Positions 9,685 through 35,000 of a stretch of 56,051 nt of DNA are shown one piece after another. The position numbers and the translations under genes were made by a program. The notes beneath the pieces are model-generated. The model was given only the letters and a program-made list of their open reading frames with translations. It did no database searches and was not told where the DNA came from. Every line of letters begins with the position of its first letter. Positions within the stretch are counted from its first letter, which is position 1. The stretch is from positions 1 through 56,051 of the forward strand of contig NIVC01003525.1 of the NCBI GenBank assembly GCA_002269645.1, written 5' to 3'. This stretch comes from Macrostomum lignano (taxonomy: Eukaryota).

Positions 9685-10080
9685 GGGCCTCAGAATTCAG
9701 AAATGAATCACTTAGAACTCTGGCCTCTCATTCCTGTCAGATGGTCAGCCCCATGGTAGCTAGATTGTGGGCTAGTAGCAAGGTCCTATAGCTAGGAGGA
9801 GACAGCGAGAGACAAGCAGGGAGAATTTGAAAGGTAGAGATTAGCTAATCCGCAGATTAACTAACCCGCTGCCGCCAGTCCGTGCGCCCCGGCTCACCAA
9901 ACCGGAGCTATCGAAATCGGACTTCTGACTAGAGGGGCACTGCACTTACCTGCCATCTAGTGTCTTTTAGCTGTCTATCTCGAAGTCATAGCCGAATAGA
10001 AGGGACGCTGCTGGGACTAAGATCGCGTTGGCGATTCAGGGACAGAGAGGACTTTTGCAGGGGGTTCTTGCGCTGGCGAG
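9685..10080 (-). repeat. Dispersed repeat family A, copy 1 (unclassified; leader exon plus intron-like segment)
   Basis: Colinear, roughly 75-80% similar by eye to 13349-13712 (shared CCTGTCAGATGGTCAGCCCCATGGTAGCT and TCTCGAAGTCATAGCCGA). Contains a consensus minus-strand donor CAG|GTAAGT at ~9944-9952. Confidence 0.75.
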
Positions 10081-10119
10081 CCTTCATACACTACTAAAAG
10101 TCTCGAGCGTGGTTCGAGT

Positions 10120-10335
10120 TGCCGCCTTTTATAGCTCTCACGCGGCCGATTTGTTACAACGCACGCCGAAATTTCCGATTGGCTGAGAGCTTTTGTTAAA
10201 ATAGGCGCCGAATTTTCTGATTGGTCGAGCCGGGGGCAGTCAGGTCGACTCTGATTGGCTAAGCTCAAGACCCCAAAACCCACCCCACGAGGTGGCCTTC
10301 AGACCCCAGGGAAGATGACAGGTGCGGTCATATAT
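10120..10335 (-). promoter_or_regulatory. Pol II-type promoter module (3 CCAAT boxes plus TATAAAAG) within the repeat family
   Basis: Minus strand: CCAATC at ~10178-10183, ~10219-10223 and ~10253-10258, then TATAAAAGG at ~10125-10133. A related module occurs at 23315-23510. Confidence 0.55.
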
Positions 10336-10515
10336 CATGCGCAAAACATAATAAAAGCCACTAGTCTAGACACCCTGGCGCCAAAAGTGACAGCAAAACA
10401 CATAAATTAAAGGAGAAAGTAACAGAGCGAGTGGGGAGAAGGCTGGAAAGACCTCTTTGACCCAGACAGGCTGGAACCAAAAGTGTCAGCTAGACCGCCA
10501 TAAATCACTGAAAAC

Positions 10516-12052: not shown

Positions 12053-13348
12053 GTCAGAACCTCACATGTGGACTGCTGTGTCATAACTAAAATCTATTAG
12101 CTTTCGGTATACAGTACACATGGATAAAAAATCTGCTTATTCATTTTTTCGTCAACGTATTTTTCACATATTTCTACTAGTAGTAGTCAATCAAATAAAA
12201 TGCCGGCCCTAAACCTACTAATTGAATATTTATAATATCCGGCTGTTTTTAATGTAAGTACTTTCATTCTTGAAGTGTCAGTTATTGTAGTTGTGCGCTT
12301 ATATTTCCTATTTATAGATTTATAAGTTTTTATATACGGCGTTAAATATACATTTTTATAGCTGTAAGAAATTAGATTTAGACGAATCTCTCACATGACT
12401 TGAAAAATGCCGCCATAAAAGAAGAATTTTCTGTGAACTCCAGAAGTGCTGAAAGAGGACGGCACCAGATCGACAGGCTGATGGAAGTATAGCTTCCAGA
12501 GTCGACCTGCTGTTTGGTTAATACTACACCTAAGATTTAGGTGCTCACGTGCGATGAAGGGCGATGAAGCAGAGTCAGAAGAAGCGCCTGAGGGCTAATC
12601 TAACGAAGTTCTATGAAAGTAGGGCTGCTGAACCTAATCCTAACACAAACGTTGGTTGAATGCTCCGAAGACCTTAACGCTAACGTAACCAGAAGACTGC
12701 ATTAGCAGACCAGAAGGTTAAGTTTTTGGCACTGTTAATGGCAGGCACGGTGTGAAAAGTAAGACAAGAATGTCTCCGCAAAGTTGACACGCATGCACCG
12801 GGAGCCAAAACAAAAGCTATAGGAGAGAGCGCATGCGCGTGCTGAAAGACTTGTGATAACAAACAACCATTTCACTCAAAGCTGATTGGTATAAGGTACC
12901 ACTTTGGAGGCAGAAAGTTCAAAGACTAATATTGGTCTCTTTCGTTCATTTATATTTTATTTACATAAAACCTCGCTACACATGATGACTTGATGTGTGT
13001 GCTTCTACGTTTTTATCGCATAAATAAACGATGATGGCTGTATGACGATTAGGTTTTAGGTTGAGCTTCCAAGCCTGAGGAGGGATTTCGGATGCGAACG
13101 CATTCTACAGAATCAGTAGCCAGGAGAATAACTAAACTTGTGATGAAATTCTTCTTATGCTTCGAATTGTTTCAAACACGTTGCGCGGTTTGTGGCATAT
13201 ACGATATACCAAAGTACCACTGTATAGAGAGGTACAGCACGTGCAGGGTCCTTGGGTGAGACAAAAGTACGAGCTACAAAAAAATCGCGACTAGGGGGAT
13301 AAAGTTTGATGGGATTCGACCTTCGGGCTCCTTGTTAGGGAAGCCTTC

Positions 13349-13712
13349 GGGCCTCAGGCTCAGAAATAAATCAATTAGAGACCTGGCCCCCCACTCCTGT
13401 CAGATGGTCAGCCCCATGGTAGCTTGATCGTGTGGCGAGCAGTCTAGGTCCTATAGCTTTTGAAAGTAGAAATTAGCTAATTCGCAGATCAACTAACTTG
13501 CTGCCACCAGCCCGTGCGCCCTGGCTCACCACACCGGGACTCTCGAAATCGGGCTTCCGACTAGAAGGGGCTTTGCACTTACCTGCCAACTAGTGTCTTT
13601 TTGCTGTCAATCTCGAAGTCATAGCCGATGATAAGGGACACTGCTGGGACTAGATCGTATTGGCCATGCAGGTACAGAGGGGACTTGTGCAGGGGATTCT
13701 TGCGGTGGCGAG
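13349..13712 (-). repeat. Dispersed repeat family A, copy 2
   Basis: Colinear with 9685-10080; donor-like GCAG|GTAAGT conserved at ~13577-13586. Confidence 0.75.
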
Positions 13713-13799
13713 TCTATGGGGTAGCTACATGTACTATTACATTGCTAAATACGAAGATATGTACTTTTGGCCTTCAACGCGCCAACTAGCCTCTCATAG

Positions 13800-14203
13800 C
13801 GCTGATGATAGAGTGATTTTGGCGTTTTTTAAGCAGAGAAGGCGAGTTTTGGGTGTGCAGAGCGTGCTTTGGGCTGGCTGAGTGTCAGTTAGGCGTAAAA
13901 TTGGGGTGGTGGGTGGGGGGAGAGAAAAACGCCAAACCCGCTTAACCAGCTAATAAACGCCTGGGCAACTTAGGCAGCTAATTTTACGCGCAACCAGCTG
14001 GAAAGACGCCTAGGCAGCTAAGTTTACGGCCATGTAGGAAAGTACGCTTGGGCCGCCGAAATTACGCTCTGCCCGCCCAAATGACGCTTTGGCTGCTCTG
14101 ACAGCCAATTTTACGCTCAACCAACTGAAGTGACGCTTAGACAGCTAAGCTTACGCCCAACCAGTTGGAATGACGCCTAGCCAGCTAAGTTTACGCCAAC
14201 GGG
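13800..14203. mobile_element. CACTA/EnSpm-type subterminal repeat module (left of the transposase)
   Basis: GGCGT-oriented motifs followed by about 13 (T/G)ACGC(C/T) motifs, ending in CCAACGGG at 14203, similar to the CCAGCGGG terminus at 22877. No matching left terminus found. Confidence 0.5.
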
Positions 14204-16393
14204 ATCATGCAAAGTACCGTCGCGCGCTGGTCGCCGCCGTCGCTGAATTCAACGGCCGCGCGGCCGCCGCGCGCGTGGCAGTGACATGAATAATTTCTCG
14301 ACGTCATCCCGCCGCCCCGCACGGTCAGCAGTCGGCTGACGGCCAGCCGCAAGGATGCGGCTAATATCGCAGCCAGATACAAGGAGCTAGTAGGGGAGAT
14401 CACGAGCGCGATTGAAAATTTCATGGCTCCATATTCGGTGTCAATATTGTTACAGTATTAGCTTGCATGGTTGACTTTGCCAGGAAGCTGCACATTTACT
14501 AGCAACATGTTGCCGCTGTATTATCACTGCGGTAGATTATACCCTTTCTGACACCTTGCATTACGTTCTGAAACGCAACAATACAATTGAAAGTAATAAT
14601 TAAAGTAGACTTTTTGATGGAATACAGTAATTCTGTTGGCAAAAGACCGGAAGCAAATGTTTTATTTGGAATTTAACTGCCGTCGAAGGCCCACTTTAAA
14701 AGACCAATGATGACTAATTATGAAATGTATTTCAATTGCGCAACTTGTTGAAAACATCTATTATAGGCATGAATGAACTGAGCGAGCACCCAACGTGTGT
14801 CTACAATTAACGACAATTGCGTTATCTTGCTCGAGTGGAATAGGCACAGATTCAAATTGCATTGTATTTCTCGCTCAGATCATGCCCAAAGAAGAGTAGT
14901 GCTGCACTTCTGTGATCTGCACTTACATTTAACTGGCTGGCATAACAGGCCTCTGCCTAAACCGGAGCTCTCTAATACTAAAAGTATTTTAGTCAATACT
15001 TGGAATGACTGGACCAACTTTTGTGTTTAGTAGTCGTTTATTTGTTGCCTAATTGTTGTGGCTTTGTGCAATGTTAAAATAAGTATAGGAGATTAGTAAG
15101 AGTAATCTGTTAAATGTTTCTTCATCTTTCATTGTAGGCAGCTTTCTAGCTGTACACTTTTTTGGCTTGTACTTAATTAATTATATGACCTTTGTATCAT
15201 TTGTGTGGCAAAATTCTTGATTTTTGCCTTTGGCATGTATATATAAATAAGAATTTGTTGCCAATTAAAGTATATGACTAGACCTATTTACAAGTCGCAT
15301 CTGATAAGATTTTTAGGCTGAGAAGGCCTAAGCTTGAGAGTTCATGTGTTTTGATTCATTATATTGATGTATTTAAACTGTCTTTAGACACATAATTTAG
15401 AGCTTTTTTTCTAGAAATCAATCAGTGTGAAATTGTGAAAATATGCATATATGATGTGATATGAATTTTGTATATAATATTTCATTTTTATTGGTTATTA
15501 ATAGAAAGTCTACATTGCTTTTTTGTCATTTTAGGCACTATCAAGCTGAAAAAATGATTTCTTGCTAGCTACTATCATTCCTAGCTATCTTTTTTTAAAG
15601 ATACAATCATGTCAAAACAGCTGAAACAATTTCTTGCATCTCATTTTGAATATCATACGAAAAGGGAAAACAAGATCTTGAAATAAATAAGTGTAGATCT
15701 CAAGCTTTCAATTCAAGATCTTAAGTCTAGGTTTCTTAATATGCCTAGGAGTAATTATTAATATGCATATTTAGGCGTAATAGGAAATTTTAATTAATAT
15801 AATTTAACATAAAGTCGTATAGTATAGTAATGATACCATACAAAAAATGGACTATTGCCTTTAATGTCCAAGAACATTTGTTTAAAAAAATATCCATACT
15901 TGGCTAGCTTAATTTATAGACTTCTGCATACATAAATCCAAGAAATAGCTTGATTTACAACTGTCCATTTAATGTATAAAAAAAGTAAGAATATAACCTA
16001 TGACACATTTTCATGATTGGTACTACTAACAAGAATAATGTTGCAAATTCCTTCCACTTCTATATCAATTTGCTTCAAAAGTTTTAGCTTCTCAAAGTAT
16101 TTATTTTTAATTTCTTCTTTTAATGTCCCTTTCTCTTTCCTTCTGTTTAAGGTAGCAACATTAGTAAACTCAAATGAAATAGACCTTGAACATGAGGACA
16201 TTAGAGGAGACTGTTGCTTCCACTTCTAGTTCTAGTTATGGCAGCATTGCCAGATTGCCAGTTTCAATATTGGACAACAGCCTCTTGTGGTTGCAGCATT
16301 ATATATATAGACTAAGCAATGGCAAGATCCTCTAAATGCAGCAAAAGACAGGCAGACAGATAATGCGATGCGACCACCCAAAAACCCACAGCC

Positions 16394-19300
16394 ATGGATG
16401 ATGTTCCTGGAGGCGTCAGGCGCCCTGACAGGCGTCAGTATTATGCAGACTACAAGCGGCAACGGATTGCCACGGAGGACCCTGTGAAGGCAGCTGCGCG
16501 TAAGGCACGTGCTGCCAAACACCAGTACCGCTATCAGGCGCGCAAACGGCAGGAAGCTGCAGGCGCAATTGCTGTACCTCCCAGTGGTGCGAATGCAGAG
16601 CCTGCAACTGAGGACACAGTGTACGACGCAGAGCATTCGGACGAGGAAATTAATCGATTTATCCCAAGACCTGCCGGCGACACAGTTGGACCCGTCGCTG
16701 GTGCAAATGCGACGCCAGCTGGCGACCACGTGCACGGGTGTGGCCAGGGGCATGGGCAACGCGAAGCATCGTATGATGCAGACGAAGAGAGCAGCAGCGA
16801 CATGGAGGATGTGCACGTGCTTGGTGGCGACCCTGCTGACAATTCCACAGATTCTGGAGACTCAGAGTCAGATGACACTGCGCAGGAACATGACTATGGC
16901 GGTCCTGACCGGCAGCAGCCAGTGACTGACGGCAGCCGTCACACATACGGCAGTTTCTGCGTTGCTGTCCAGATGTTTAAGGTGAATGTCAGTCTGAAAT
17001 TGTCAATGTCTGTCACGTATGGAATGCGAGTGCCACGAATGCGTCACCTTTTTGCGACTATACAGACGCGACACCGACTCACACGATGCGCACTGACGGA
17101 CCTGCTGCAGCTATTCGAAAGCACCCTGCCTCCTGGCTCCAAGATCCCCACGTCACCCTATCTACTGCGCAAGGCTCTCGGGGTCAACAAAAAGGTGAAC
17201 TGCACACACTACTGCCTGTCCTGCCTGGCTGAAGTCCCGGAGCAGGCCCCCGCCTGTCCATGCTGTGCTGCCGCTCTCACAGCTGACCTGCGCGGGACCT
17301 ACTGGCAGTTGGACATACTGAGCCAAGTGAGACAGTTAATCGAAACGCAGGGACTGCTGCGCAAGGTGGTGTTTCCGGCTGATCAGTCGGCCACAGAGGA
17401 GTCGCTGAGTCGCAGTACCTCCAGCAGATACCAGTATTTCAAGGCCCGTATCGACGTGGCGGCGAAGCAGCATGTCAGCGGAACGGTGAATATTGACTCT
17501 TTCCAGGTCAGTCAACTTTATGGCGTTAAAATCGTTACACTCCGGGCTGCGGCCTATAGTTACAGTCCGATAGTGTGAGTAACAAAATTAATAATTCGTT
17601 GCCATTGTGCAGGTCTTTCAAACAGCCACCTATTCAATTTGCCCGGTGTACCTGAGCATCAACGAGGTGCCCGAACGACTGAAAGGAAAATTTTTAATCA
17701 TCTGCGGGTTCTGGTGTGGACGCCGGAAACTGAATTGCACCGCCTTCCTCCGACTTCTTGTACAGCAGTTAAATATTCTGCAGTCGCGTGGCGTGGAGTA
17801 CTCCACTGGTAAATATTTACTCCAACATTGACGGATAAGACGGTCCAAAGAAAAGCATCCGCACTTAGGCTGCGTATTAAATTTTAGGTGGCGGCCCAGA
17901 CGGACTTTCCGCCGGTCGTCTGTTCGTGACAATCCTGGTGCTGCTTCTGGATGCACCCCAGCGTGTCGAAGCAACCTGTCTGCAGCAGTTTAATGCGCTT
18001 TTCGGGTGTGACCACTGTTACATCCAGACGGCCCCTGTTCCCGGTGGTGGCGGCCGTTTCTTCCCTCCTGATGTCACGAATGTGCACCTCGCCGAAGCGG
18101 AACGGCATGGCTGCCAGAACGTAACACGCCGGACTCTGGAGGACACGGTGCACCTCGCCGGTAATAAGGCACCGGCCGCCAGCAACCTGCTCGGCGTGAA
18201 GTCCGTTTCGCCTCTGATCGGACTGGTGCGACAGGGGTTCGACTACATTGTGGACTCGCCGTTCTGCTACTTGCACCAGACGCTGGGTGGCGTTAAGTAC
18301 ATCATCTGCCAGTTGTTCAGCCAGATGGACAGAAAGCCAGACAAATATGCAGGTGAGATACAGCTGCGTCTATCGCTACAAATCCATCCCACTTACAGTA
18401 CATATGAAGAATACGCAGTTGGAATCCCAATAACGGGCTTTCTTACAGTCAATCCTGATCTGCGGCACGACATTCCGACCGTGGACGTAATGACGGCCCA
18501 GATCCGGGTTCCAAGGGGCTCCATTCAGCGACCTCCCCGCAGTCTCCGGGATCTTCATCACTTCCGCGGGCACGAGTTTGAAGCGTGGCTGCTGGCATAC
18601 GGCCCTCTGGTGCTGCCCCATGTGTTGCATGGCGAGTATGAGCGATACCTGCAACACTTCCTGTTGCTGTCATCCTCCGTCTTTTGGCTGACTCTGGAGG
18701 GGGCGCCGATGACGGAAGTTGCAGGGACAAGGGCGAACCTGCGCCAGTTCGGCCATCAACTCCACGGCCTGTACTCGCGACGCGCCAGTACTTACAATAT
18801 GCACAAGGTGCTGGAGAGTGTCGTTAAGGGTTTTTAAACAAAGTTGCAGATTTTGTTCTCACTGTCACCACACGGTCATTGAAATTTTTTCCACACAGGT
18901 TACTCATCACATGACCGACTATGCCGAAATGTTCGGCCCTATCCACCTGTCAGCGGCGCAATTCGAGGCGCATCATCATGCTCTGCTCTCCCAGCTGCAC
19001 GGCAGCCGGAGCCTCGGCGCTGAGCTGCACGCCGTCATCCAGACGGAGGTCGCCTGTCGGGAACTGCGCGGTAGAGTCCCGCTTCCTCCTGCTGTCCCTG
19101 ACAACCGGCAGGAAGTGGATGGGGTGGTTGTGACTCACCCATTGCGACGGACTGACGGGTGCTTCAGACACGCGTTGCTGCCGAACGGCTTCCGTATTGA
19201 GGCCTACTCACCTCGGTTGCGGGCGCGACGCACAGTCTCCAGCTTCGTCGGCATGTTTGCGGACAACTGGTCTCACCCGAGTGATCGCTCCGCACATGAC

Positions 19301-19597
19301 TTCCTCTTTGCCCGTGTGGAAGCTATTATGCCAAGGGGCCCCCGCGTTATCCTCCGCATCGGACTGCTGCCGGTGGAGCCACCGCCTCCACAGCCAATCT
19401 TCAGTGGCGCTGCAAGCCAAGACAATGCACCCGGGGGATGCTCCTTCCGGCATGTCCGCCGTCTGCGCTGCGACCCCTTTGGAGAACTTCCGGAGGCAGA
19501 CATGCGTGAACTGGATGCGCGGCGCATCTTGGGCGCGTGTGTCCTCACAGACACGCACATCGTGCTCTTGTCGCACGCGCAGGCGTCCCATGCATGA
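16394..19597 (+). CDS. CACTA/EnSpm (CMC superfamily, Transposase_21-like) DDE transposase, 6 exons, ~915 aa, apparently intact
   Basis: Exons 16394-16981, 17066-17506, 17613-17808, 17888-18352, 18449-18807, 18899-19597; all introns GT-AG (79-106 nt); total 2748 nt. Kozak GCCATGG. Family motifs: RHRLT..LLQLF..LPPGSKIP, CxxC..CxCC, NIDSFQVF..SICPVYLSINEVP, LDAPQR..QFN..GCDHC, GVKSVSPL, YLH, PRSLRDL..EFEAWLL, YNMHKV.H..FGP..FE. Confidence 0.9.
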
Positions 19598-20193
19598 CAA
19601 ATTGCGGTGCTGCATGACTGTCTCAATGTCTGTAAACTGACTGTTTTGTAATTAAAATTTGCCTCTGCCGCCGACTGTTTGAGTTATATGTCTTTTCTTT
19701 AAACACTCTTGGATGTCGAATCTTATAAAATCCGCATACAGAAATGAGAAATTTGAATGGTAATCTAGTATGTACACCTTTTTCTGCATTTGTCTATTGT
19801 ACATATTTATATTTAATGGAAGCAAACACTGCTTTTCTTTAATATGCCGTGCATAATTTAATTAATTTTGCTCACATTTCTCCTTCGTTCAGCCAGCGAT
19901 CCTGCGATGTCAGGTCCCGTTGTAAAAAACATCCGTTTCAGAGCGTCCGTTTTGCGACTTGTCTCGCTAGATTCGATGCACTGAATTGATTGCTCTGCTC
20001 TGTTCTGTTTGCTCTGTTCCACTGACTGACTCATTGTCTTAGTTGCTTTTGTGAAACTAAAATTCAGTACCCGCGTAACGTTCCATTTCCACATTTGTGA
20101 CCATTCAATCCCCAGCTAAACTACATCCTAGATACATATCAGTACGTTTCCATATATGTACAGCGACTGCGGTGTTTTGCCCCCCCCTTGCAG

Positions 20194-21867
20194 ACGCAGC
20201 AGACGAAGACCCAGCGCAGGCCGAGTCAGCGCGCAACAACGCAGGCTTCTGCAGCAGCAGTAGCAGCAAGCACCAAGCCGAAGAAGGGCCGCAATGTTAA
20301 CTCCCAGCCAAAAGTCGCTGTACACGTGGAGAATCCCACTCCTAGCCAGCAACCCATTCTGTGCACATTCTGCGGGTCCTGGCCCCCGAGTTCCATTGCG
20401 ACCGCTGCCCCCCTGTAGGTCAGCATACGTGCGACGGCTGCAATACACAGTTCCATAATCACCCCGACCGACGCAGTCATCAGCCTGTGCGTCTACACGA
20501 AGGTAAGCTCAGAAGATATTGATACCGGGTTAAACATTTGCGAAGTCCAAGTCCACACTGTCTCGGATGCACTACAAGTCCCCCTCTCCCACGCCCACAC
20601 AATCCCTCCAGTAATCAATACGGAGCCCGCTGCCCCGTCTGTCTCTGAAGGCGCGGAAAACAGTCAGCCTGCCGCGCTAGCGACAGTCAACGAAGAAGCT
20701 GCCGGCGAAGCTGACGACGCTCCCACAGGTCCGTGCCACCAGTGCAGCTTGCTGGAGGAGCAACTCGGCGAGGCCCGGACGACCGCCAACCGCCTTGACG
20801 CGACGATCGTCGAGCTGCGCGAACAGGTCGCCGAGGCCGCGAGTGCACACCATGCAGAGGTTGCATCTCTCCGGATGGAGATTGACCACCTGCGGAATGT
20901 GTTGGCGGACCGAGACGCCGACCGACACCGTCTGGATTCTGACCTCCTGGCATTGCAGCGCAACGTCGTTGAGTGGGTGCAGTCCACTCGGCAGCACCTG
21001 CAGGGGGACCTGGCACCTCGAAGCGCGCTACAACGCCATCATTGTCTGGAAAATCGTCGTGATGAGGCTGCGGCAACCGAGTCTACGTTTTTGTCGCAGC
21101 TCTACTCTACGGAGGCGGTGTCGTTCTCTGCTGCCACTGCAGCCGCCACCGTGTCCGCCCAGCCCATGGCCGCCGCTGCTGCTGTGCATCAGCAGGACCT
21201 GGCTGCAGGCGGGGCGAGCGGCACGATGACGCCACTATTGGCCGGCTATAATATCTTGGTAAGGCGTCACACTGATTTTTTACAAAACCAAGTATTTTTA
21301 CTTGCAATCACTTCCGTTATTCCGTGTATTTCATTACACTGTCAGGTTCCTGCCCTCACCGCCGTCGTCGTTCGGTCGGCACTAAGTGACTTCAAGCGGG
21401 ACCCGGACGCTCACAATCGGAGCCGCCTGATCCGGAAGCTGCTGCAGGCCCTCTTCACCAAAGAGGAGCTGCAAATCAGCAGCTGGTCCGGCAAGACCCG
21501 CCGGCCCGGCGCTGCTAACAGCCCCGAGAAAATGATGCAGGCTCCGTCGGCTGCAAAGCTTGACGTCCTGGCGTCTTTCCTGTTGACGGAGGCCGGCATT
21601 GCTGACTGCAACGACGAGGTCCGGGCCGTGTTTAAGAACATGGCCGACAACAGTCGGCGGGGCTCGCGCCCGAAGGCTGCTCGTCCTGCCCCTGGAGGTG
21701 GCGATACGCAAGCCGAAAAGCGCCCCCGCCATGCAGAGTCTGCTATCACACTGCAATCACGGCCGGCGAATGCGGCGAATGCGTCTAATCCTGAACCGGC
21801 GGCGAATAGGGGATCTGCACCAGTGGTTAATGATGGCTCTGAACCGGCGGCGACTGCGTCTGCCTAA
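20194..21867 (+). CDS. Transposon-associated accessory protein: B-box-like Zn finger, coiled coil, BEN domain (one frameshift; start not resolved)
   Basis: Exons ~20194-20502, 20612-21258, 21346-21867. C-terminal LIRKLLQALFTKEELQISSWSGK..KLDVLASFL..VRAVFKNMADNSRR fits the BEN pattern. Heptad region LEEQLGEARTTANRLDATIVELREQV. CTFC-x8-CDRC-x7-CDGC-x4-H-x7-H results after restoring one base near 20379. Confidence 0.7.
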
Positions 21868-22479
21868 AAACGTATAATCTGTGTCAAAATAACATCACAA
21901 AAATGGTTACACGTTTTCGTCTTCATGCTGGTTTAAAAGCGCTCTTGCAAGCTAGCTTCAACTCATCCACTGTTTTTTCAGTTGCAAGTTACTAGTGATT
22001 CCCCACAAAATTTGTCCCGGCGAAAAGTTCATTATTGCTGCACCGGGATATCTGTTGAGTTTGACTCAACAGCGCCATGCTTTTATTGTTCTTTAGTACT
22101 TTGCATTGCATTACAAAAAAACAAAAAAATTACATTGTGGCTCTCATTACATTTCCAGCTCCACTGTTTTTGCTGCTCCAGCTCCACAGCATTTTATTAT
22201 GTTCCAGTTCAAGATTTACGTTTACAACTTTCTTTGCTGTTTGTATTACTTTCTTGTTACAGCTACGACTTTTATGCAGCTTGTCTTTTTGCTCAGTCAT
22301 TTGCCAGCGAATTAATGTTAATGTTAATGTTAAAAAATAATATTTAATTAAATACATACGTTCCTAGTTGTGTTATAAATTAAAAAACCAATTAAGGTAA
22401 CTAGCTAAAAATTTTCAGCCATTATCTCTTACACTTTTGATTATTTTCTACGTACGGGACGCAGCTAGTACAGTGTATT

Positions 22480-22877
22480 CCCGAAGTACCGCGGCGTAAG
22501 CAATTACCGGGCAAGGCGTATTTCAAGCGTAGCACTGGCGTATGCCAGGCTGGCAACATGCGTATCTCAAGCGTACCGCAGGCGTAAGCTTAGCGGGCAA
22601 GGCGTATTTCAAGCGTACCGCGAGCGTTAACCCCACCCCAAACCCCAGCTGGTTAGGCGTGCGTGGGCGGTTTCTAGGCGTATTTTTGGCGGTTTCTGAA
22701 AATGTGCCTCAGTTTTACGCCTGTTTTACGCTTCTTTACGCACAACCTGCTATGTTTACGCCAAGTTTACGCGAAGCTCCCCCATCCTCCCCATAGCCGC
22801 GCACCCCCACCCACCCCTCCCCCGGAGCGTTTTTAAAGCGCATTTTAGGCGTATTTCGCGCTCCGTTTTCCAGCGGG
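22480..22877. mobile_element. CACTA/EnSpm-type terminal module or ~400-bp non-autonomous element
   Basis: Begins CCCG and ends CGGG, with ATT on both sides (22477-22479, 22878-22880). Left half has GCGTA repeats and right half TACGC repeats (inverted subterminal arrays). Confidence 0.6.
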
Positions 22878-23314
22878 ATTAGACTACTAGCAGTCTTATT
22901 GAATGATTTCTGCCTCAGCAACAGCACTACTGAACAAAATGAGCAAAAGTGTGCGCCTAATTCAGCTACTGCAACAGGGGACAGATAAGGGATCACCCAA
23001 TCAAGCAAGTCTAGGTAGCCTCTCACCCAACCAATCAGAAACTCAACAGCCGGAGACCAGGTAATCCACAGTGACCGAATCGGCTTGATGCTCTGCAGCT
23101 GTAGACTCGGGATGATGCTGTCACAATCTTCGCTGTTAGCTAGCAGGTGATGCTCTTCACTTGATGTTCGCTGCTGATGACCGGGGGACTCGTCCTTGAT
23201 GATGATGGGGGGGGGGAGTTGCAATCCGGGGATCAAGAAACGACGGTCAGGCTCCGGGAGGTCTCAAGCTAGGCCAAGTTCCCAGGAGGTTGCCGTCCGA
23301 GCGGGCCAAAAACT

Positions 23315-23510
23315 CCGGTTTAAATAGCCGCCAACTGGACCGCAGTTTGTTATAATGGAACACTTCGATTCTGATTGCATGGCTGAGCCGTTTCGTTAAA
23401 ATGAGCACCGAATTTTCTGATTGGCTAAGCTTGTTGCTACCCAGAATCACGTGACCGGGAGATCCTATCAGTTCCCACAGGGTCGTAAAAAGATGACAGG
23501 TGCGGCCATA
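23315..23510 (-). promoter_or_regulatory. Second copy of the repeat-borne CCAAT/TATA-like promoter module
   Basis: TGGCTGAG..GTTAAAAT..CCGAATTTTCTGATTGG..AAGATGACAGGTGCGG matches 10180-10330; TATTTAAA on the minus strand at ~23320. Both family members also share AAAA(G)GTGCGTCCTCATC (~11411-11428, ~24020-24035). Confidence 0.5.
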
Positions 23511-24996
23511 AATCACTCAAAATCGCAACAAAATGATTTATGACTTTTCGCGTAGGATTGACAGAAATTAATGAAAAATATACATTAGAAAGCTCTTATT
23601 AAATAAGTGAAGATAATGAAGAGAAATTGCTAATCGCTAATCCCAAAGTACTTTTAGGGGTAAAACGCATAGCTGTCAAAGTTGTCACACGCTTGAGTGA
23701 ACACGAACAATAGGCTCTGACCTCATAAATCTTGATAGCCTGTCAAAATGATGAAAAAAAGCTACCGCCCGCATCTTCTCAGACCATCTGGCGCCCGCCT
23801 CAACACTGAGTGAGGCGCAGGTGGCTGTCAGACCAGCTTCGAAAGCGATGATTTTTGACCCAAAAAGCTGCGCCTATGTTATTATGACTACTAGTATGAC
23901 CAAACATTGTATCTTGTATAGATTCTATGACTATCCGCAGAAAAAGAATAAAAATGCCCTTAGCCTGTTGTCAGTAGGCTAGTAAGTTTAGAGCCCATGT
24001 GCTAGCGCGGGATATGGGAAAAAGTGCGTCCTCATCAAATTATTTAATTCTTAATTCTTTATTAAGTAAATGGATGAATATTCTCATTTTAAAATGTTCA
24101 ATTTCTTTTTTCTAAGAGGCATCACATTGTTGGTTTTATTTCCTCAGTCGTATTAGCCCTACAAAAGTCACATCACGCGACTTTAGTCAAGCTATGTTTA
24201 CAATTATTCCTGCTTAAAAAGTTAAATGAAGCTCTAAAAACAAGAATGATTTTAAGTATATTGTGCACTTTAATGAACTATAATAACTATACGCTTGTTT
24301 TAATAGGCAAAAAACATTTAAGATGTTTAAATTAATAATAAAAATAATTATTTCAACTTGAGCGGCCCGCGCCCGACGGTTCGTCGTGATCCATCCATGA
24401 AGCATGAAGGTGTGTCCGTCGTTCGACACTGTCCGTCTTACTGAGTGAAGCAAGCAAATTAATTTTGTCAGTTGTCATTAATCTAACTTGATCTATAGTT
24501 CAATACTTAATGGTAATGTTATACCTCGTCATTCAGTCTTAGTTAAATTGTATGAAACGAATATTTGTCATGTTTATGCCTAGTGTCGTTTGTCAATCAG
24601 CTCTAGGCCTATCCTTAAGAAAAAAAACCTGGCAGCAATCGAGAGTCGAAGAAATAGGCCTAGACATTGTGCCTATCTAGATCTTTTTAATATTCTATCT
24701 CTATGGCTTCTGAAGCATTTTTATATTTGCTTTTTTATGTTGGCTTTGTACATAGGGCCTATTACCATCTTACTAGGGGGCCTATCCAAATTTATTGAAG
24801 TTGATTAAGAGGTACTTGCAAGTTAATCAAACTAAATGTTTAGTAGAATATTCACAAGATCTCCACGAGACAAGATTCAAATTTCAAAATCATACATGCG
24901 CAACCTCTAATTTAAACTGGCCATAAGACTTACTTTTTGACAAAAAAATGCGACTTACTTGTGATAGAAACCCTAAAGCAAAATTAATACAATTTT

Positions 24997-25059: not shown

Positions 25060-26386
25060 ACCACGTCTGTATTTGGGGTGGGCATTTTCGCTACTTTGTC
25101 TACCACAATTTACAGTGGCCAGATCGGCCAGGTCGGCCAACAGTTGCGCATGTATGTTCAAGACAAGATAGGGCCTATTGTCAACTGTTGTATTGACATT
25201 CTTTTCATTTAAAAAAGGCAGTGCTTATTTAGTCGGCACTGGCCGAATAAGTTTGCTACTATTTAGCCGGCAGGCATATTCAGGAAGGTGGCCTCTGAGG
25301 GGGAAAATTCCAGCGCACACAAAGGGTCTCGGCGCACATTGGCGCACAAGCGCGGCGCACACAAAGGGTCTCAGCACACATTGGCACACAAGCGCGGCGC
25401 ACACAAAGGGTCTCAGCACACATTGGCGGTTGGCGCACCCACACTCTGGATCATGTAGTATATGCCCGAAAATTCGGGCGTGCATTGGCCTTGCACGCCA
25501 AAATTAGGTGTGCACAGTTGGCGTGCATCACTCCTAAGAAAAAAATATGCGTGCACACCTGGCGTGCACTTTATAGAATCACGCGTAAGAGTTATTGTAA
25601 AGTAGAAAAAAGATGAAAAAGTTCATTTTTAGGCGCAAATTTCAAGCTTTTCAGTTTTTTCCAGCTCGTAAAAGAGTATTTAAACAAATCTTTGCATGTA
25701 TAAACTTTCCATTGTAAATAGTATTGCCAAAAAAGCTTTAAAAGCAACAAGATTATCTAATAATAAGGGTCTCTTGTGCAATTTAAAAAAAGGTCTTTTA
25801 TTGTCACAATGAAAAAAAGGTCATTTATTGTCGCAACACTGGCATATTTTTGAGAATGGGCATGTACTAATTTTTTTTTGGCATGCAGTAGTAATTATTC
25901 AATTTTTTAATAACGGCGCACAGAGGGCGCACAGATGGCGCACAGATGGCGCATAGATGGTGCACAGATGGCGCACAGACGGCGCACAGATTGTCCCTCT
26001 AAAATTTATTCCGGTGCACACTCTGCCACCTTCTTGACTATGGGCCAGCAGTCCTGCCCCACTGCCAGTCAAATAGCTTGTTACTATTTAGCCGGCAATC
26101 CTAGCCCCCAATGGCCACGCCATTATATATATTTATTCGAGATATTTAAACTTTGGGCAATTCAAAGTAGGTACAGTGAATATAAATCAATGCAGATTCA
26201 GTACAATTTATTACTTGCCTTCAAGTTTGTTTAATTGTTTCTGGAAGTCTTGCATATTCCGGAAATTATTTGAAGCAATAGAAGACACATAAACAAAATA
26301 AAAATTAATTATGCATGTTTTACTTTCACTTTAATCTCTAAATCAAAACCACTCATTAAAGTCAAAAAACCACTGCAAACACCTTT

Positions 26387-28666
26387 GAACGTGGGGAGAC
26401 CAGTTCAGCCTGTGGTCCAGGGTAATACCCAGACATTTAGTCTGCTTGCAGAAGGGGATTTCCCTTCCGTAAAGCGTGAGCGGCCGAATCTGCCACTTGG
26501 TCCTGCTGGTGAACATGATCGCTGCGGTCTTAGTCTCAGAGAGCCTTAAACCACAGCGGTCCGCCCATTGCTCAGCAGCGTAGATGAAGTTCTGAAGAAG
26601 GTCCCTGAGGGTATCAGGGGACGGACCAGATGCCACCGCGGTGACATCGTCCGCATATCCAACTTTCAGAATGGGGTCAGGCCGAACATCCCGGAGGAGC
26701 TCATCAATGACCATATTCCAGAGAACTGGAGACAGCACCCCACCTTGCGGGCTACCTTTGCAGACGGGGACCGTCCTCTGGTAGCCCAGCAGACTGGCGG
26801 TGGCCGTGCGATGGCTGATCATGTACATGATCCATCTGGTGAGATGTGAGTGCGTTAGCCTCTCACAAAGAGCTCTTCGGAACGCCTCAAAGAGGACGTT
26901 ATCGAAGGCGCCAATGATGTCCAGGAAGATCCCCAGAGCAAAGCCACTACCAAGCACGGCCTTCTCGAGTTTATCGACCAGGACGTGCAGCGCGCTTTCA
27001 GTGGAGCGACCCGCCCGAAAAGCGTGCTGGTTCTCGCTGAGAGGTTTGTTCTTCAGCTCAACAGAGAGAAGGCGCCAAAGCACCAGTCTCTCCATCAGCT
27101 TGACCAGGGAGGAGGTCAAGCTGATCGGTCTGAAGGATTTGATAGAATGGTAGTCCGGGCGGCCTGGCTTAGGGATAAAGATCACCTTTGCCTCGGTCCA
27201 TGCCTGCGGGACATAACCAAGCGTGATGCATGCCCGAAGAAGGCTGCAAAGTTTGCGCAGGAAGCCTGGGCATTTAACCGCCTCTCTTAGAAGGGCCGGT
27301 ACAATGCCGTCGGGTCCTGGGGCTTTGAAAGGCTTGAAGGAATTTGCCGCTCTCACAATGCGGTCCTCCGTGATGATAGATGCAGCCAGCGCGTGACCTC
27401 CCTCCGAGTGATCCGGAGTGGTCTGGTTAGCTGGCTCGTTAGGGAAAAACGCAGTGAGCATTACATCAAGCGTTTCCCCTGGGTTGTCCGTGGACGTACC
27501 GTCGGTGCGTTTGACCGAGGAGAGCTTAGACATTTTGTCCAGCGTGAGCGCTTTCACAACTCTGGAGGTGGGGCGTGAGCCCTCTAGCTCCTCACAGTAT
27601 TGTCGCCATTTTTGAGCCTTTGCATTCCTAACCTGCCTTTTAAACTCATGAATTGCTTCATGATAGGCGGTTTGGTCTGCAGGGCTCTTAGTTTTAGTTG
27701 CTCTGCGGTGGAGTCTCTTAGCCCTGCGACGGAGGTTGCCGAGCTCGGGATTCCACCACGGCGCCAATTTTTTCCCTTTATAGGCTTTTAAAGGGCAGGA
27801 CGCCTCAAAGGCGGCGGTTAGCGTCTCTGTCAAAACAGTCGCGCACTCATCCGCCTCTCGGCACGACGTGATCGTGGATGGTTGGCCAGGAGACCGATGG
27901 AATTCCTTCAGGGCGAGCCCGAAGGTTTCCCAATCCGTATTTCTGGCGTTCCGTCTCCACATAACACGAGTTGCGCTACGCGCGGCCATTAGGTTGAAGG
28001 AGATGAACTTGTGATCCGATAGTGAGGACACTGGAAGCACCCGCCACGCCCCAATACTCTGGTAGAGTCTGGGCGTTGCGAGCGTAGCGTCGATCACCTC
28101 CGACCACCGTCCGTTGTCAAAGGTAGGGGTGGACCAGAGTTGCAGAACTCGAGGGTCGTAGAGGCAACGTAGGCTAGGAGGTCTTCGCCTCTCTGATTAA
28201 TGCCAGTGCTGCCCCAGTGAGTGTGGTGGGCGTTGATGTCGCCGGCAACCATGAGCTCGTAGTTTTTGGCAGAGCAGAGCTCTACCAGCGTAGCGAGGGC
28301 TCTGGGGACGACCGCAGCATCGCCTGGTAGGTAAACCGAGGCAATGAGGGTGGTCTTCCCAGGAAGAAGGTCCTCGGATTGGATGACGCAGATGTCCCTG
28401 TTGGACAGGTCCGATCTGAGCCACGCACTGAGCGTTTTGCTCGCAAAGATGCAAGCTCTGGGAGGCTGGTTGGCCTCGCGAGGGTAAGTATAAAAACAAT
28501 TGTAGCCAGCAGGGGCGTTTTGAGGCTTACCTCTGAGAGTCCAGGGTTCCTGGACGAGGATGAGCCCCGGCTTGTCGAGCTCGGCGTAACGCATAAGGTT
28601 GACCGAGGCTGCGACGCAGTGCTGCAGATTAATCTGCAGGCAATGGATTCCCTGGTTGCTGATCAT
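26387..28666 (-). pseudogene. LINE ORF2, N-terminal part: AP endonuclease plus reverse transcriptase, frameshifted
   Basis: APE motifs QINLQH, LVQEPW, ASVYLP, GDINAHH..WGS, SDHKFI. RT motifs KAPGPDG, FRPISLTS, QHAFR, DIIGAFDN, PQGGVLSPVLWN, YADD, LGITLD. A 1-nt deletion near 28133 shifts NSG-(S)TPTFDNGRWSEVID. Confidence 0.9.
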
Positions 28667-28808
28667 TATCACGCAGTTGGGGAATCGTTGAGCAGGTCAT
28701 CCTCCTCCTTTTCAGTGGTGGGTGACCCGCAGACCTCCATGGGAGTTTCAGCGTCCTCAGCAGTTAGGGTGGCTGTGGAGTCCTCCGCGGACGTGAGCCC
28801 AGCGTGGA

Positions 28809-30232
28809 CGCCAAAAGCCAAAAAGGCCTTCGCAGTCCTCGCGCAATTGCGCAGGGCCGTCGGCACCACCTGGGGGCTCACCCCCAAGCGCCTCTGGTGG
28901 ATCTACACTGCAATGGTTAGGCCCGCTATCTCGTATGGCGGCCTGATCTGGGCTAGCGCCCTGCAGATAAAGACCTGTCTAGAGGCTCTCAGGAGAGCGC
29001 AAGGGCGCGCTTGTCGCACGATCATGAGCGCCCCTCCGTCTGCTCCTTACGATGGCCTCAACGCCTTCCTCAACATTCCTCCCCTGGACATCTTTGTCCG
29101 CAGGGAAGCGGCTAAGACTGCCCGCCGTCTAGCTGACGCTGGCATTCGAATCCAGCCCCATAGGGCCATGGCTAAGCGCAAGCTTCTGCCCCACGCTGAC
29201 CTCTGCCTCAAGGACTTGAGAGACAGCGGCGGGCTCCACGTCCTATCTGACGGCGAACCCCGCACTCTCAACCTCTTTCAGCGCTACAAGGTCACCATCC
29301 CCTCTAGGGATGCTGCCAATGACCACTGGAATTTCCAGGAGGTCCATTGCTACACGGACGGATCCATCAAAGACGGTCGCGCCGGCTTTGGGGTCTGCAT
29401 CATCATCAACGGCCGCGTAATTGCCACGCATGCCCAGCACACTGGTAGACTCTCCACAGTCTTCCAGAACGAAGTCCTTGCCATCAGCTCTTGCGCTGCA
29501 GAGCTAAACGCCAAGGTTACGAGAGGAAAGACTATTGTCATCCACTCCGACAGCCAAGCGGCCTTACAGGCCCTTTGCCACACCACAACGAACTCCCGGA
29601 CAGTCGCCGACTGCGCCCGGCAGCTCAACCTCCTGGCCAGAAGCAATACTGTCAGGCTGAAGTGGATCCCAGGGCACGCAGGGTTTCCGGGGAACGAGCT
29701 GGCAGACACCCTCGCCAAGAGGGGCGGCTCTGGCTCTTTTTTCGGCCCTGCCCCCCTGGTCCCTATGCCCTTGACAGTCATCAATCGTCAGATCGACGAC
29801 TGGGCTGACTCCCTCCACAGGGACAGATGGGCGGGCACCCAAAACTGCCGGCAATCTCGTGCCGCGGTTCCTTGCCCGTCTCACAGGCTCAGAAACATCC
29901 TTCTGAACCAGAATCGGAAGGATATTCGAGCCCTTGTCATGACCCTTACCGGCCATGGCTACCTCGCCAGGCACTGCTTCCTCCGAGGCGACCTCGAGAG
30001 CGAAATTTGCCCCTTTTGCGAGTGCGACAATGAAGATGCTCAGCACTTTGTCTGTCACTGCCCTTTCTTTAACAGAGACCGGCTACGCTACCTCGGGCCG
30101 AACCCGTCCATTGACGAGGTTTGCCAGCCCGACAGCATCCCACGGCTCATCCAGTTCCTTCGGGCGACTAGACGAGCCAGTTTCTTCCCAACGGAAGATC
30201 ACGCTGCAGGACGGACCGGCGGACCACCCTGA
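28809..30232 (+). pseudogene. LINE ORF2, C-terminal part: post-RT region, RNase H, Zn knuckle
   Basis: KAKKAFAVLAQLRRAVGTTWGLTP; RNase H YTDGS..QNEVLAI..HSDSQAAL..WIPGH..GNELAD; CPFC..ED..HF..HC; stop at 30232. Confidence 0.9.
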
Positions 30233-32098: not shown

Positions 32099-35000
32099 AT
32101 GATTGGGAATGGAGGAATTCCTATACAGAGTCTGGCTGGCATCACAAGCCTTACTGACAGTAAGTAATTTGTTTATGAGTCTGGTTACCCTTTTAATATG
32201 GTCCTAATCATTCAACTGCTTGTTCCCATCACTTGAATCTTCCCTAATAATCATTATTAGGATTTCTTAAATGTCCTAAAAATCCTAAGCAGCCATGATT
32301 TTAAAATTCCCCAAAATCCCAGTTACTTGTGCTATTCTATTATAATAAAAGATCATGGTACCTTGAGAATCCACACTCGCCATCACAAATCCACGAGTTT
32401 CCCATTAAGGAATCCTATAGGGAAACTCAGCCACTCATACTACCGGAATTCCCCATGGAGAATCCCAGCCACTTATAATCCCGTAATTCCCCCATTGGAA
32501 ATCCCATCTGCTCAATCGCAGAATGAGAATCTCCCATGGGGAATCCCAGCCACTTATAATCCCGAAATTTCCCATGGGGAATCCCAGCCAGTCATAATCC
32601 CAGAATTCCCCATGGGGAATCCCAGCCACTCATAATCCCGGAATTCCCTATAGGGAATCCCAGCCAATCATCATAATCCTAAAACTTCCTACGGCAATAT
32701 AGAATAAGCCTTCAATCTACTGTGGAAATTAAACAAACCCGCACTACTAACAGTAGTACACTATCGATTATCGCCCGCAGTCTTGCCCGAGCTGCCGCTG
32801 CCCAGGCCTGTCCAGTCCAGTCTATCGCGCCAGCAGTCCCTGTACTACAGCCAGCGAGTTGGTCAGCAGGCCGAGCAGCAGCTGGCCCAGGGGCGCGGCA
32901 ACATGCGCCTGTTAGAGAGCATCGGCTGGGCCCTCACCCAGACCGACACTTCATCTATCGAGCTCAAATCCGATCAATGCGCCGCTGCCGCACCGCCGGC
33001 TCTGTTCCAGGCCGTTTTGGCGCAGAATACCCGCCGATTTGAGAAGCGGCCCGAGTTCGCTCCCTACTGCCAGTCCTTGCTGGCTAACGGAGCCGGCGGT
33101 CGGGCAGCGGAAGACGCCGGTGTCGGGGGCGGCGGAGCCCCGCCAGTCTCGGGGTCGGCCACGTCGGGGCTAGTCGATGACGCCGAGCCGGACCAGGACC
33201 AAGAAGAGTCTGGCAAGCGGGAGAAACACCGGCACAAGAAGAAAAAGCGCAAGAAAGAGCGCGAGCGTCGCTCGTCTTCTTCTACAAGGGACGACACGAA
33301 CGAGACCAATCCGAGCACCTCGACGACACCGTCGGGAGCCTCGGGCCAGGTGACGGTGGTCAGCCGGGAGGGCATCAAGATCAAGCTGAAGCTGCCGTCA
33401 CCCGTGGTGAAGCCAATCAGGATTGAGAATCCCGCTTCGGAGCGGCCCGCGATTGTCTCCGACGATGTCGCCGAAGACTCCGTCGCCGCCGTCGGGGAGG
33501 CGGCGGACGCTGAAACGGCTTCGGTGTCCCGGCAGCATAAGAAAGAGAAGCGCAAGAAGCACAAGAAAGACAAACGGAAACGCAATGAAGTTGATTCAGA
33601 GCCGGGCGGTGATGCTTTGCAGCAACAGCAGCACCCACCGCTGCAGCCGCTCACACTGTCGATGCCTCAGTCGGCTGCTGCTGCACCAGCGTCTTCATCG
33701 CTAACTCCTGGCGGACTCAACGCTTTGGACTCGCCGGGCTTCTCCCGCCAGCAGCAGCAATCGAAGCTTCAGGAGTTATTAACGAGGCCAAGGCCTGCTC
33801 AGCAGACTCCTCAAATGCCTCCCCAGCATCCGCCTCCTCCTCATCAGCAGCCGATGCAGCCGCCGATGCCTCATCAACAGCAGCAGCAACAAACAAATTA
33901 TCCTCCTTCCCAGCCTCCGATGCCTCATCATCATCATCCTCAGCAGCAGCAACAGCAGCTTCCTATGTACGGGTCGCCAACCCAGATGCCTATAATGCCG
34001 CCAATGCAGCAGCAGCAACCGCCGCCGCAGGTGTCCACAGCTCTCCCAGCCTCCCTATTCGATAACCTGCAGCTGCTGCCAGGCTTCCTGGCTGGTCCTA
34101 GCGGGGCCGACGTGCTGCCGGAGATCGGGGAGAACTGGCCCGACCAGCCCACCCTGTCCTATCCCAATCTGGGCGAAGTTTCCTGCGGCGCCGGCGGCGG
34201 CTATCCCGGCGGTGACAGCTCCGGGTTCCCCTTCCTGCCGCAGCTTCCTATCGGGGCTTCGTCTCCGCATCATCTGCATCATCATCAGATGCAGCAGTCC
34301 GTTGCCACACCGCAGCTGTCAATGCAACCGCCGCCGCCTCCTCAGCAGCAGCCAATGCCGCATCCGCATCATCTCAGCGGCGCTGGCAGCGGCAAGGGCG
34401 GCAAGCCAGCCTCCGTCACTGGCGGCGGCTCGTCGACTCGAAAATCCAAACGCGGCGGCGGCGGTGGCGGCACTCGTCGAGGTGGCGGAAGGTCGCGCGG
34501 CGGCGGCGCCGGTGGCGACCCAGTCAGCAGCGAGGTGCGCAACCTCATGGACTGGCGCGTGCGCGACAAAACTGGCGGCGCCTCGACTGCGGCAGACGGC
34601 GGCGACTCCATGGACGCCGACGAGTCGTGGGACTCGCGGCTGGAGCAGCACAACCGGTCTCTGGCTGGCCGGTTCAAAAACTCGCGCCGGCTCGCCGCTC
34701 AGCAACAGCGCGGCAACATGCAGAACATGCCGGACTATCTGGAGAGTGACGACGAGGACGATGGAGAAGGCGGCGGAGCGTCGAAACGGCAGCGGCGCGA
34801 CTCCGACGAGGATTTTAAAGGTAGATGGTCGATGGACTGCGCAAGTGTTTTGACGATTTGCCGTTATTTTGATGTCAAATTTGGCGCCTATCTGATGTCA
34901 ATTTTGGCGCCATTCTGATGTCAGTTTTGGCGCCGATCTGATGTCAGTTTTGGCGTCATTCTGATGTCAGTTTTAGCTCCGATCTAGTGTCAGTTTTAGC

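Follow-up and report, generated by a model that had tools for sequence, protein, structure and literature searches.

A second gene encoding a probable divergent BEN domain in a CMC-type DNA transposon lineage of the flatworm Macrostomum lignano

Contig NIVC01003525.1 of Macrostomum lignano (assembly GCA_002269645.1), which was analysed over its whole length of 56,051 bp (referred to as the window), carries a two-gene DNA transposon of about 9.1 kb (about 13783-22877), in which the transposase gene is followed by a second gene, here called ORF2. The element is a cut-and-paste transposon of the CACTA/Mirage/Chapaev (CMC) group, and at roughly even odds (a probability of about 0.5) the product of ORF2 would bind and pair the element ends in the manner of TnpA of maize En/Spm, using a probable BEN domain that would recognize subterminal arrays of the motif ACGCY. 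Two-component DNA transposons, in which a DNA-binding helper accompanies the transposase, are known from plant En/Spm (TnpA), PIF/Harbinger, and VANDAL. We know of no characterised helper of animal CACTA-type (CMC) elements, and literature searches recovered no description of a DNA transposon with a BEN-domain gene. The locus adds a helper-like gene that a single lineage of flatworm transposons has conserved in four or more diverged families and that is accompanied by cognate, helically phased end arrays. In the databases, its product is represented solely under the name "hypothetical protein" or within mis-fused transposase models that are labelled "C2H2-type domain-containing protein".

Three-frame translation and inspection of splice sites placed ORF2 at 20156-21867 on the plus strand, as a multi-exon gene co-oriented with and 3' of the transposase gene. 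The exon model corresponds exactly to the annotated stand-alone protein PAA62969.1 (P0011, BOX15_Mlig001703g4; 502 aa), which is encoded by another copy of the element (L004) and whose N-terminus, MYSDCGVLPPPLQTQQ..., is equivalent to the ATG at 20156 of the window. An intact ORF2 is present in eight gene models, and intact copies encode a separate protein of 502 aa that comprises, in this order, a B-box-like zinc finger, an acidic linker, a CxxC motif, a coiled coil (about 40-85 residues), an Ala-rich linker, a divergent BEN domain, and a basic tail. An initial annotation of the window had already described a co-oriented multi-exon gene downstream of the transposase and within the element ends, with the same TAA stop; its 5' boundary at 20194 does not apply to the stand-alone protein, whose coding sequence begins at 20156, but coincides with an acceptor site used by some ab initio fusion models. 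The features of the two genes are as follows (slashes mark splice junctions):

16394-19597, plus strand: transposase gene PAA50970.1 (BOX15_Mlig001703g12, 915 aa), multi-exon, terminated by a separate stop codon, with the CMC-type signature D, D, C(2)C, H(4)H, E
20156-20502, plus strand: ORF2 exon 1, with the ATG at 20156, beginning MYSDCGVLPPP..., and 1-bp deletions in the C-runs 20180-20187 and 20383-20387
20362-20480, plus strand: eight-ligand B-box-like zinc finger CTFC-x8-CDRC-x7-CDGC-x4-H-x7-H, frameshifted in the window copy
20503-20611, plus strand: ORF2 intron 1, GT..AG, 109 nt; junction HE/V/INTEP matched in P0011
20612-21258, plus strand: ORF2 exon 2, with the acidic linker, the CxxC (20734-20745), the coiled-coil/heptad segment (20746 to about 21003), the Ala-rich linker, and the first part of the BEN-like domain (21220-21258)
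21259-21345, plus strand: ORF2 intron 2, 87 nt; junction NIL/VPAL matched in P0011
21346-21867, plus strand: ORF2 exon 3, in which the BEN-like domain continues to about 21660 and is followed by a basic tail of low complexity and the TAA stop (21865-21867)

Because intron 2 is in frame, an open reading frame (ORF) called under the bacterial code runs through it.

Judged by its catalytic signature, the transposase of the element is of the CMC type. The signature is conserved in the transposases P0001-P0004, where inspection of alignments, not a curated model, located the motifs xIDxF, DAPQR, GCDxC 19 residues on, NxH-x4-H, and FE 20 residues past the second H. No Pfam transposase family, including Transposase_21, was matched by the ORFs of the window or by P0001-P0005, even at E-values up to 10.

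The strongest indication that ORF2 belongs to the element comes from related transposons. The sister transposases P0002, P0003, and P0004 were traced to their contigs, so that four families could be compared: that of the window and L004, those of L001 and L002, and that of the metagenome contig L003. A metagenome scan for further transposase loci yielded none that could be confirmed. The transposases of L001, L002, and L003 are 36-39% identical to that of the window, and each is followed by an ORF2:

Sister ORF2 genes, co-oriented with and downstream of the transposase: L002, 14816-16225; L001, 19106-20374 and beyond; L003, 2947-4419

The ORF2s of all four families have in common an invariant CxxC that leads straight into a coiled coil, a linker, a VPL motif, and the core R-x-L-x4-F-x3-E-x7-G, and in L001, L002, and L004 the gene lies within identified terminal inverted repeats (TIRs). 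Since four diverged transposase families carry a co-oriented downstream gene with the same core, the element lineage maintains ORF2. The reading frames are open, and the low identity among the ORF2s of different families (19-26%) points to old co-descent rather than recent copying. The homologues in these families are thus not host genes unlinked to transposases; on the contrary, four of the four families examined carry a transposase-linked ORF2. The shared core, together with the location inside the TIRs of L001, L002, and L004, supports the earlier proposal of an element-encoded second protein analogous to TnpA. That ORF2 is merely a chance neighbouring host gene was rejected on the grounds of its position inside the TIRs of three elements.

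The C-terminal region of ORF2 is probably a divergent BEN domain, judged from profile searches and a structural model. The BEN-like motif SRLIRKLLQALFTKEELQISSWSGK, which the initial annotation had reported near the C-terminus, was found at 21421-21495. The window sequence matches the Pfam family BEN (PF10523) with 17.4 bits (E = 0.005), which is below the gathering threshold of 23.2 and concerns only profile positions 2-30 of 76, i.e., the N-terminal third; the intact ORF2 scores 15.6 bits, and the ORF2s of the three sister families (L001, L002, and L003) have no Pfam BEN match at E ≤ 1. When a profile of the C-terminal region of all four families (A3) was compared with 177,635 PDB sequences, the top three matches were the BEN domains of NACC1 (8yzs, E = 0.028; 7bv9, E = 0.04) and Bsg25A (4x0g, E = 0.56), and the alignments to NACC1 span the whole domain (profile positions 35-121). 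A single-sequence AlphaFold2 (AF2) model of the region has six helices and a mean predicted local distance difference test (pLDDT) score of 67, with core blocks at 78-87. A Foldseek search of the PDB with this model returned BEN-DNA structures (Bsg25A, BEND6, Insv, and BANP) as its top eight matches, with probabilities of 0.57-0.99. The name BEN is thus backed by the four-family profile and the structural matches but falls short of the Pfam cut-off.

The best structural or profile matches of the domain are BEN proteins such as Insv, Elba1/Bsg25A, BEND6, BANP, and NACC1, whose R-x-L-L-x2-lF-x2-eEL-x5-sG pattern resembles the conserved core of ORF2. BANP also pairs a coiled coil with its BEN domain. 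By contrast, all the named proteins are host transcription or insulator factors and none is a transposon gene, and ORF2 is just 15-22% identical to BEN domains in the structural alignments. Neither the frame-corrected ORF2 nor the four-family BEN alignment retrieved a match in word-indexed homologue searches, although low-complexity words may have obscured the outcome for the former. An exhaustive phmmer search with the BEN region against 1.84 billion representatives retrieved only the fusion model of the element itself and one spurious repeat protein (P0006).

The N-terminal part of ORF2 plausibly contains a cross-brace finger of the B-box-like kind, as indicated by its ligand spacing. The ligand pattern given in the initial annotation is present at the position listed above, and its loosened eight-ligand form has a single occurrence in a six-frame translation of L004 and none in 200 shuffles. 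In intact copies, the finger fits the B-box cross-brace spacing C-x2-C-x7-12-C-x2-C-x4-8-C-x2-C/H-x3-6-H-x2-8-H, with seven residues in the third loop, which classically has 4-5. The top PDB sequence matches of the finger are weak, with the CYLD B-box first (E = 0.13, all ligands aligned) and B-box1 of MID1 second (E = 0.37). Of the B-box families of Pfam (PF00643 and PF22586), the full model of ANCHR-like_BBOX is covered (1-38 of 39) but scores 17.6 bits (E = 0.0043), under its cut-off of 27, and zf-B_box remains below its gathering threshold (9.9 bits, E = 1.1), so that the name B-box is favoured by the spacing and the top matches but not by the curated families. There is also a partial match of the finger to zf-HIT (E = 0.006), and by our reading its last four ligands fit the C2H2 pattern as well; in UniProt, the fusion models are labelled "C2H2-type domain-containing". 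A Foldseek search with an AF2 model of the finger alone gave no meaningful match; the model itself (pLDDT 53.7) is too poor to interpret.

The long heptad segment of the initial annotation was recovered as a proline-free, heptad-like helical stretch that follows the CxxC (20734-21003); residues 162-250 of ORF2 are devoid of proline, a crude heptad score peaks at residues 155-196, and several coiled-coil families of Pfam match weakly. The CxxC directly before the coiled coil (20734-20745 in the window) is invariant in all four families. Its conservation as a pair of only two ligands suggests an intermolecular metal site at the base of the coiled coil, which may serve dimerisation in the manner of a zinc hook.

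The combination of B-box and coiled coil that had been regarded as a unit is not conserved. Among the families compared, the B-box-like finger is specific to that of the window and L004, whereas the three sister families have a different N-terminal module in its place. This module of about 90 residues (..YWVV.., ..GP..) opens the sister ORF2s (L001, 19106-19450; L002, 14816-15130; L003, 2947-3230) and has no match in Pfam or the PDB. The eight-ligand cross-brace spacing and the coiled coil farther downstream recall TRIM/RBCC proteins and the B-boxes of CYLD and MID1. However, a Pfam scan of ORF2 detected no RING, as the TRIM/RBCC architecture would demand, and the coiled coil does not follow the finger immediately, an acidic linker (about 55 residues) and the separate CxxC being interposed. 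The finger also differs from the CYLD and MID1 B-boxes in the loop between the fourth and fifth ligand (7 vs 4-5 residues) and in scores that lie below thresholds.

Both ends of the element carry motif arrays, which are the presumed targets of the BEN-like domain:

13783-13809, plus strand: degenerate left terminus; L004 has CCCGCTGGAAAATGGTGCCTCAGCGCA here, homology to L004 starts at 13810, and the CCCG terminus of L004 lies 27 bp upstream of that point
13810-14205, plus strand: left subterminal region with a G-rich block (13903-13921) and 12 ACGCY motifs (13929-14193), mostly 20 bp apart
22497-22685, minus strand: right subterminal array with 13 ACGCY motifs (22497-22681), spaced 11, 20, or 22 bp
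22717-22773, plus strand: short flipped array of five TTTACGCY motifs between the main right array and the terminus; the layout in L003 is alike
22859-22877, minus strand: right TIR, with the minus-strand sequence CCCGCTGGAAAACGGAGCG; the element terminates in ...CCAGCGGG (22877)

The 12 and 13 motifs compare with a background of about 0.8 per 280 bp (mean of 0.74 for ACGC). Subterminal arrays had been described with the motif TACGCC; they are indeed present at both ends, but with the motif ACGCY, of which TACGCC is a subset. Across both arrays, the motifs are spaced 10, 11, 20, or 22 bp apart, and their orientation is inverted between the ends. Because the spacings are multiples of about 10.5 bp, the sites lie on one face of the helix, as a cooperative oligomeric binder would need. 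The sister families likewise carry subterminal repeat arrays, each with a motif of its own (GGTAACTTTTGG in L002, GTCGGCACTGCCC in L001, and GCGTAACTGCAACGTAA in L003). CCAAT-box-like motifs (GATTGGCT) are also found in both ends of the L002 element.

The termini do not begin with CACTA, as had been assumed, but are of the CCCG type, with CCCGCTGGAAAA... at one end and ...TTTTCCAGCGGG at the other. Neither CACTA/TAGTG termini nor any TIR could be found from the window sequence alone, and the ends were resolved solely by comparison with L002, L001, and L004. The right TIR of the window is homologous to the termini of L001, L002, and L003; on the left side of the window, CCCGCTGGAAAA is absent. 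At its left end, the L004 element reads CCCGCTGGAAAATGG..., and at its right end ...TTTTCCAGCGGG, with AGA(A) flanking both sides; the right terminus of the window is identical to that of L004. The TIRs of the L002 element are 27 nt long (CCCGTTGAAAAATTATGG.../...CCATAATTTTTCAACGGG), and AGT adjoins the element on either side; the L001 element has the termini CCCGATTGAAAAT.../...ATTTTCAATCGGG and no recognisable target site duplication (TSD), and the L003 element ends with ...TTTTCCAACGGG. None of the terminal starts compared, i.e., CCCGCTGGAAAA (window right end and L004), CCCGTTGAAAAA (L002), CCCGATTGAAAA (L001), and CCCGTTGGAAAA (L003), is CACTA. Apparent TSDs of 3 bp are seen in two of the three copies in which both ends are readable (L002 and L004, but not L001), the left end of the window copy being degenerate.

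By the signature of its transposase and the sequence of its ends, the element is a member of the CMC group, of the animal type with CCC termini. CCC-type termini were reported by DeMarco et al. 2006 (PMC1636069) for animal members of the CACTA superfamily, one of them from a schistosome. The schistosome element SmTRC1 and other animal "TRC" elements (PMC1636069) resemble the present element in their flatworm host, TIRs that start with CCC instead of CACTA, short TSDs, a length of several kb, and internal repeats; the multiple alternatively spliced transcripts reported there for SmTRC1 can be counted as a further likeness. Differences exist in the transposase, which matches Transposase_21 only in SmTRC1, and in the TSDs, which were reported as 2 bp for SmTRC1 (PMC1636069) vs 3 bp in two of three copies here. 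In addition, the passages on SmTRC1 that were consulted (PMC1636069) mention one ORF and no BEN-type second gene.

If the BEN domain of ORF2 recognizes the family-specific ACGCY motifs, which are helically phased (10-11 or 20-22 bp) and oppositely oriented in the two subterminal regions, the coiled coil, perhaps aided by the CxxC and the finger, would render the protein multivalent. It could then coat and pair both ends and deliver them to the transposase, a task that TnpA performs in maize En/Spm. The location of the left array upstream of the transposase gene suggests that ORF2 may also autoregulate transcription of the element. For TnpA, multivalent binding of the ends, their pairing, and regulation of the promoter are described (PMC1636069). 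Like TnpA, ORF2 is a second protein of its element, is encoded 3' of the transposase frames (TnpD in En/Spm), and probably derives from one transcription unit with them; the short subterminal repeat arrays at both ends are also alike, as would be the proposed role. By contrast, there is no sequence relationship between the two proteins: ORF2 does not match Pfam Transposase_24 and its module is BEN-like, so that it would be at most a functional analogue of TnpA and not a homologue. Moreover, the RNA-seq-based annotation lists ORF2 as a separate protein that starts at an ATG of its own, unlike a splice form that shares the first exon. In PIF/Harbinger, a Myb-like ORF2 protein brings the transposase to the element ends, and in the Mutator-like VANDAL elements the VANC protein binds short repeats of the element that encodes it. 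These two systems set a precedent for a non-catalytic DNA-binding second protein encoded beside the transposase, albeit in other superfamilies and with other folds (Myb/SANT and the VANC fold, respectively).

Several observations weigh against a TnpA-like role of ORF2. Every domain match (BEN as well as B-box) is under the curated thresholds, and searches of the PDB with the BEN-like region of each single family retrieve no BEN domain. The Foldseek matches have E-values of 0.25-1.3 and TM-scores of 0.35-0.50 and derive from a single-sequence model with the modest mean pLDDT given above. Searches of 5.8 billion and 1.84 billion proteins yielded no relatives beyond Macrostomum-like sequences. 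The finger cannot be essential to a function shared by all families, because it is not conserved across them. The L002 motif GGTAACTTTTGG lacks a CpG, which means that a theme of CpG recognition or methylation is not general. Last, the subterminal repeats could be read instead by the zinc-ribbon-like N-terminal region of the transposase.

The latter point leads to an alternative that is unlikely overall but the one that best survives, namely that the transposase reads the arrays and ORF2 is an element-encoded regulator of host functions or chromatin, which might repress transcription or insulate in the manner of BEN proteins, counter silencing, or tether the element to target sites. The BEN proteins among the structural matches are DNA-binding transcriptional repressors or insulator-binding factors, and the N-terminus of the transposase has conserved Cys-rich, double-zinc-ribbon-like motifs that make it a potential DNA binder. 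The N-terminal module of ORF2 is swapped between families, as would be expected of an adaptor to changing host partners, and M. lignano has low-level 5-methylcytosine together with DNMT1 and DNMT3. However, each family combines its own subterminal motif with its own diverged BEN-like domain (20-26% identity), which fits a cognate co-evolution of ORF2 and the ends, although the same is true of the transposase, and nothing points to a host target.

The relationship between ORF2 and the transposase gene allows a further explanation. The name prefix Mlig001703 is common to the transposase calls and the ORF2 call; in the Mlig_3_7 annotation, transcriptional units that are ≥95% identical are grouped into a cluster, all members of which receive the same prefix. 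By this naming rule, ORF2 and the transposase would belong to the same transcriptional unit. In M. lignano, 7% of the transcriptional units are polycistronic precursors that are processed by spliced-leader trans-splicing. It is improbable, however, that ORF2 is mainly a C-terminal extension of the transposase, joined to it by cis-splicing into a fusion of about 1300-1400 aa in which finger, coiled coil, and BEN would be transposase domains. Seven UniRef gene models do fuse both frames in frame, with the junctions ...RRILGA/TFPYMYSD... and ...THI/TQQTK... (the latter at the acceptor 20194), and the products of maize En/Spm likewise arise by alternative splicing of one transcript (PMC1636069). 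Yet the fusion models are predictions from an older assembly, whereas the RNA-seq-based NCBI annotation has separate proteins of 915 and 502 aa. In all four families, the transposase ends with a stop codon after the conserved C-terminal motif ...THIxxLPxxQxxxA*, and the separate ATG of ORF2 follows this stop at a distance of 166 bp to about 5.5 kb, with another gene intervening in L001. This conservation of the transposase terminus and the ORF2 start in every family argues that the fusion models are prediction artefacts or minor isoforms.

It is highly improbable that ORF2 is a captured host gene, carried as a Pack-CACTA-like passenger without a role in the life cycle of the element: CACTA-type elements are known to capture host genes, and the F-box/LRR-like gene between transposase and ORF2 of L001 suggests capture in this lineage, but the same core, position, and orientation are kept in four families with transposases that are only 36-39% identical, the divergent ORF2s have remained open, which together indicate long co-descent under selection rather than repeated capture, and the protein searches found no free-standing host homologue. 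In the 13.9-kb L001 element, the intervening F-box-like and leucine-rich-repeat (LRR)-like ORFs (15326-17371; Pfam F-box-like, E = 4.6e-5) are probably a captured host gene fragment inside the TIRs.

If ORF2 is indeed a TnpA-like second protein, it would be an animal counterpart of the TnpA system and an instance of convergent two-protein transpososome design. It would also be a candidate evolutionary source of BEN-type DNA-binding factors, in a recently active element (99.7%-identical copies) of a species in which transgenesis is available. A more far-reaching and rather doubtful extension is that BEN is a native end-binding module of animal CMC transposons. ORF2 might then be a multivalent and perhaps CpG-methylation-sensitive reader of the arrays that licenses or blocks transposition and dimerises through the zinc-hook-like CxxC, and host BEN factors (BEN-solo insulator proteins and CpG readers of the BANP and BEND type) might descend from such genes or share their origin.

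The copy in the window itself appears defective. L004 aligns to 13810-22878 of the window with 99.67% identity, and the flanks of the two copies are unrelated, which indicates that the family has been recently mobile. Compared with L004, ORF2 of the window is one C short in two homopolymer runs (20180-20187, C8 vs C9; 20383-20387, C5 vs C6); the other differences amount to three substitutions and one 9-bp indel. The zinc finger had correctly been reported as spread over two frames, and the C missing from the second run is the cause. An intron as the cause of the split was rejected, since the 1-bp homopolymer difference to L004 explains it. Either ORF2 of the window is frameshifted or the contig carries homopolymer assembly errors.

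The defects are reciprocal between the two copies: in the window, the transposase is intact and ORF2 frameshifted, whereas L004 has an intact ORF2, which alone is annotated there, and three 1-bp indels in the transposase region (at positions corresponding to 16845, 17899, and 18426 of the window). The annotation thus appears to call whichever reading frame is intact in a given copy. Some of the reciprocal indels may be errors of long-read assembly; at least both ORF2 differences are located in homopolymer C-runs. Taken at face value, the window copy would be unable to make the ORF2 protein because of the two frameshifts and, with its degenerate left terminus, would represent a non-autonomous or dead element.

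The 12-mer CCCGTTGTAAAA (19916-19927, plus strand), which is situated after the transposase stop and before the ATG of ORF2, differs from the terminal consensus CCCGYTGRAAAA by one mismatch. By chance alone, the window should hold about one match this close; alternatively, the 12-mer might be a relic of an internal end. Outside the element, a repeat of about 650 bp (repeat R; 79% identity, rich in CCGAAATTTCYGATTGGCT motifs) is present as an intact copy at 9681-10337 and as a copy at 13345-13715 and 23305-23515 that is interrupted by the transposon and about 500 bp of additional DNA. Its use as an "empty site" was rejected, because the interruption also holds two unrelated pieces of DNA (about 70 bp and about 430 bp) and there is no clean junction.

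Besides the transposon, the window contains an Ig/LDLa exon, a non-long-terminal-repeat (non-LTR) retrotransposon, an NIPBL-like HEAT region, and many minisatellites. The non-LTR retrotransposon (26343-30232) comprises endonuclease and reverse-transcriptase ORFs on the minus strand (26343-28672) and an RNase H ORF of 617 aa on the plus strand (28379-30232). An open frame of 412 aa at 40043-41281 with a HEAT repeat of the cohesin-loader type (Pfam Cohesin_HEAT, E = 4.7e-13) is probably an exon of an NIPBL-like host gene, and minisatellites are situated around it (38453-39890, 41331-42567, and 43793-45293). A GC-rich (about 62%) open frame of 711 aa without a Pfam match (32783-34918) is followed by a 23/46-bp tandem array at 34862-35228.

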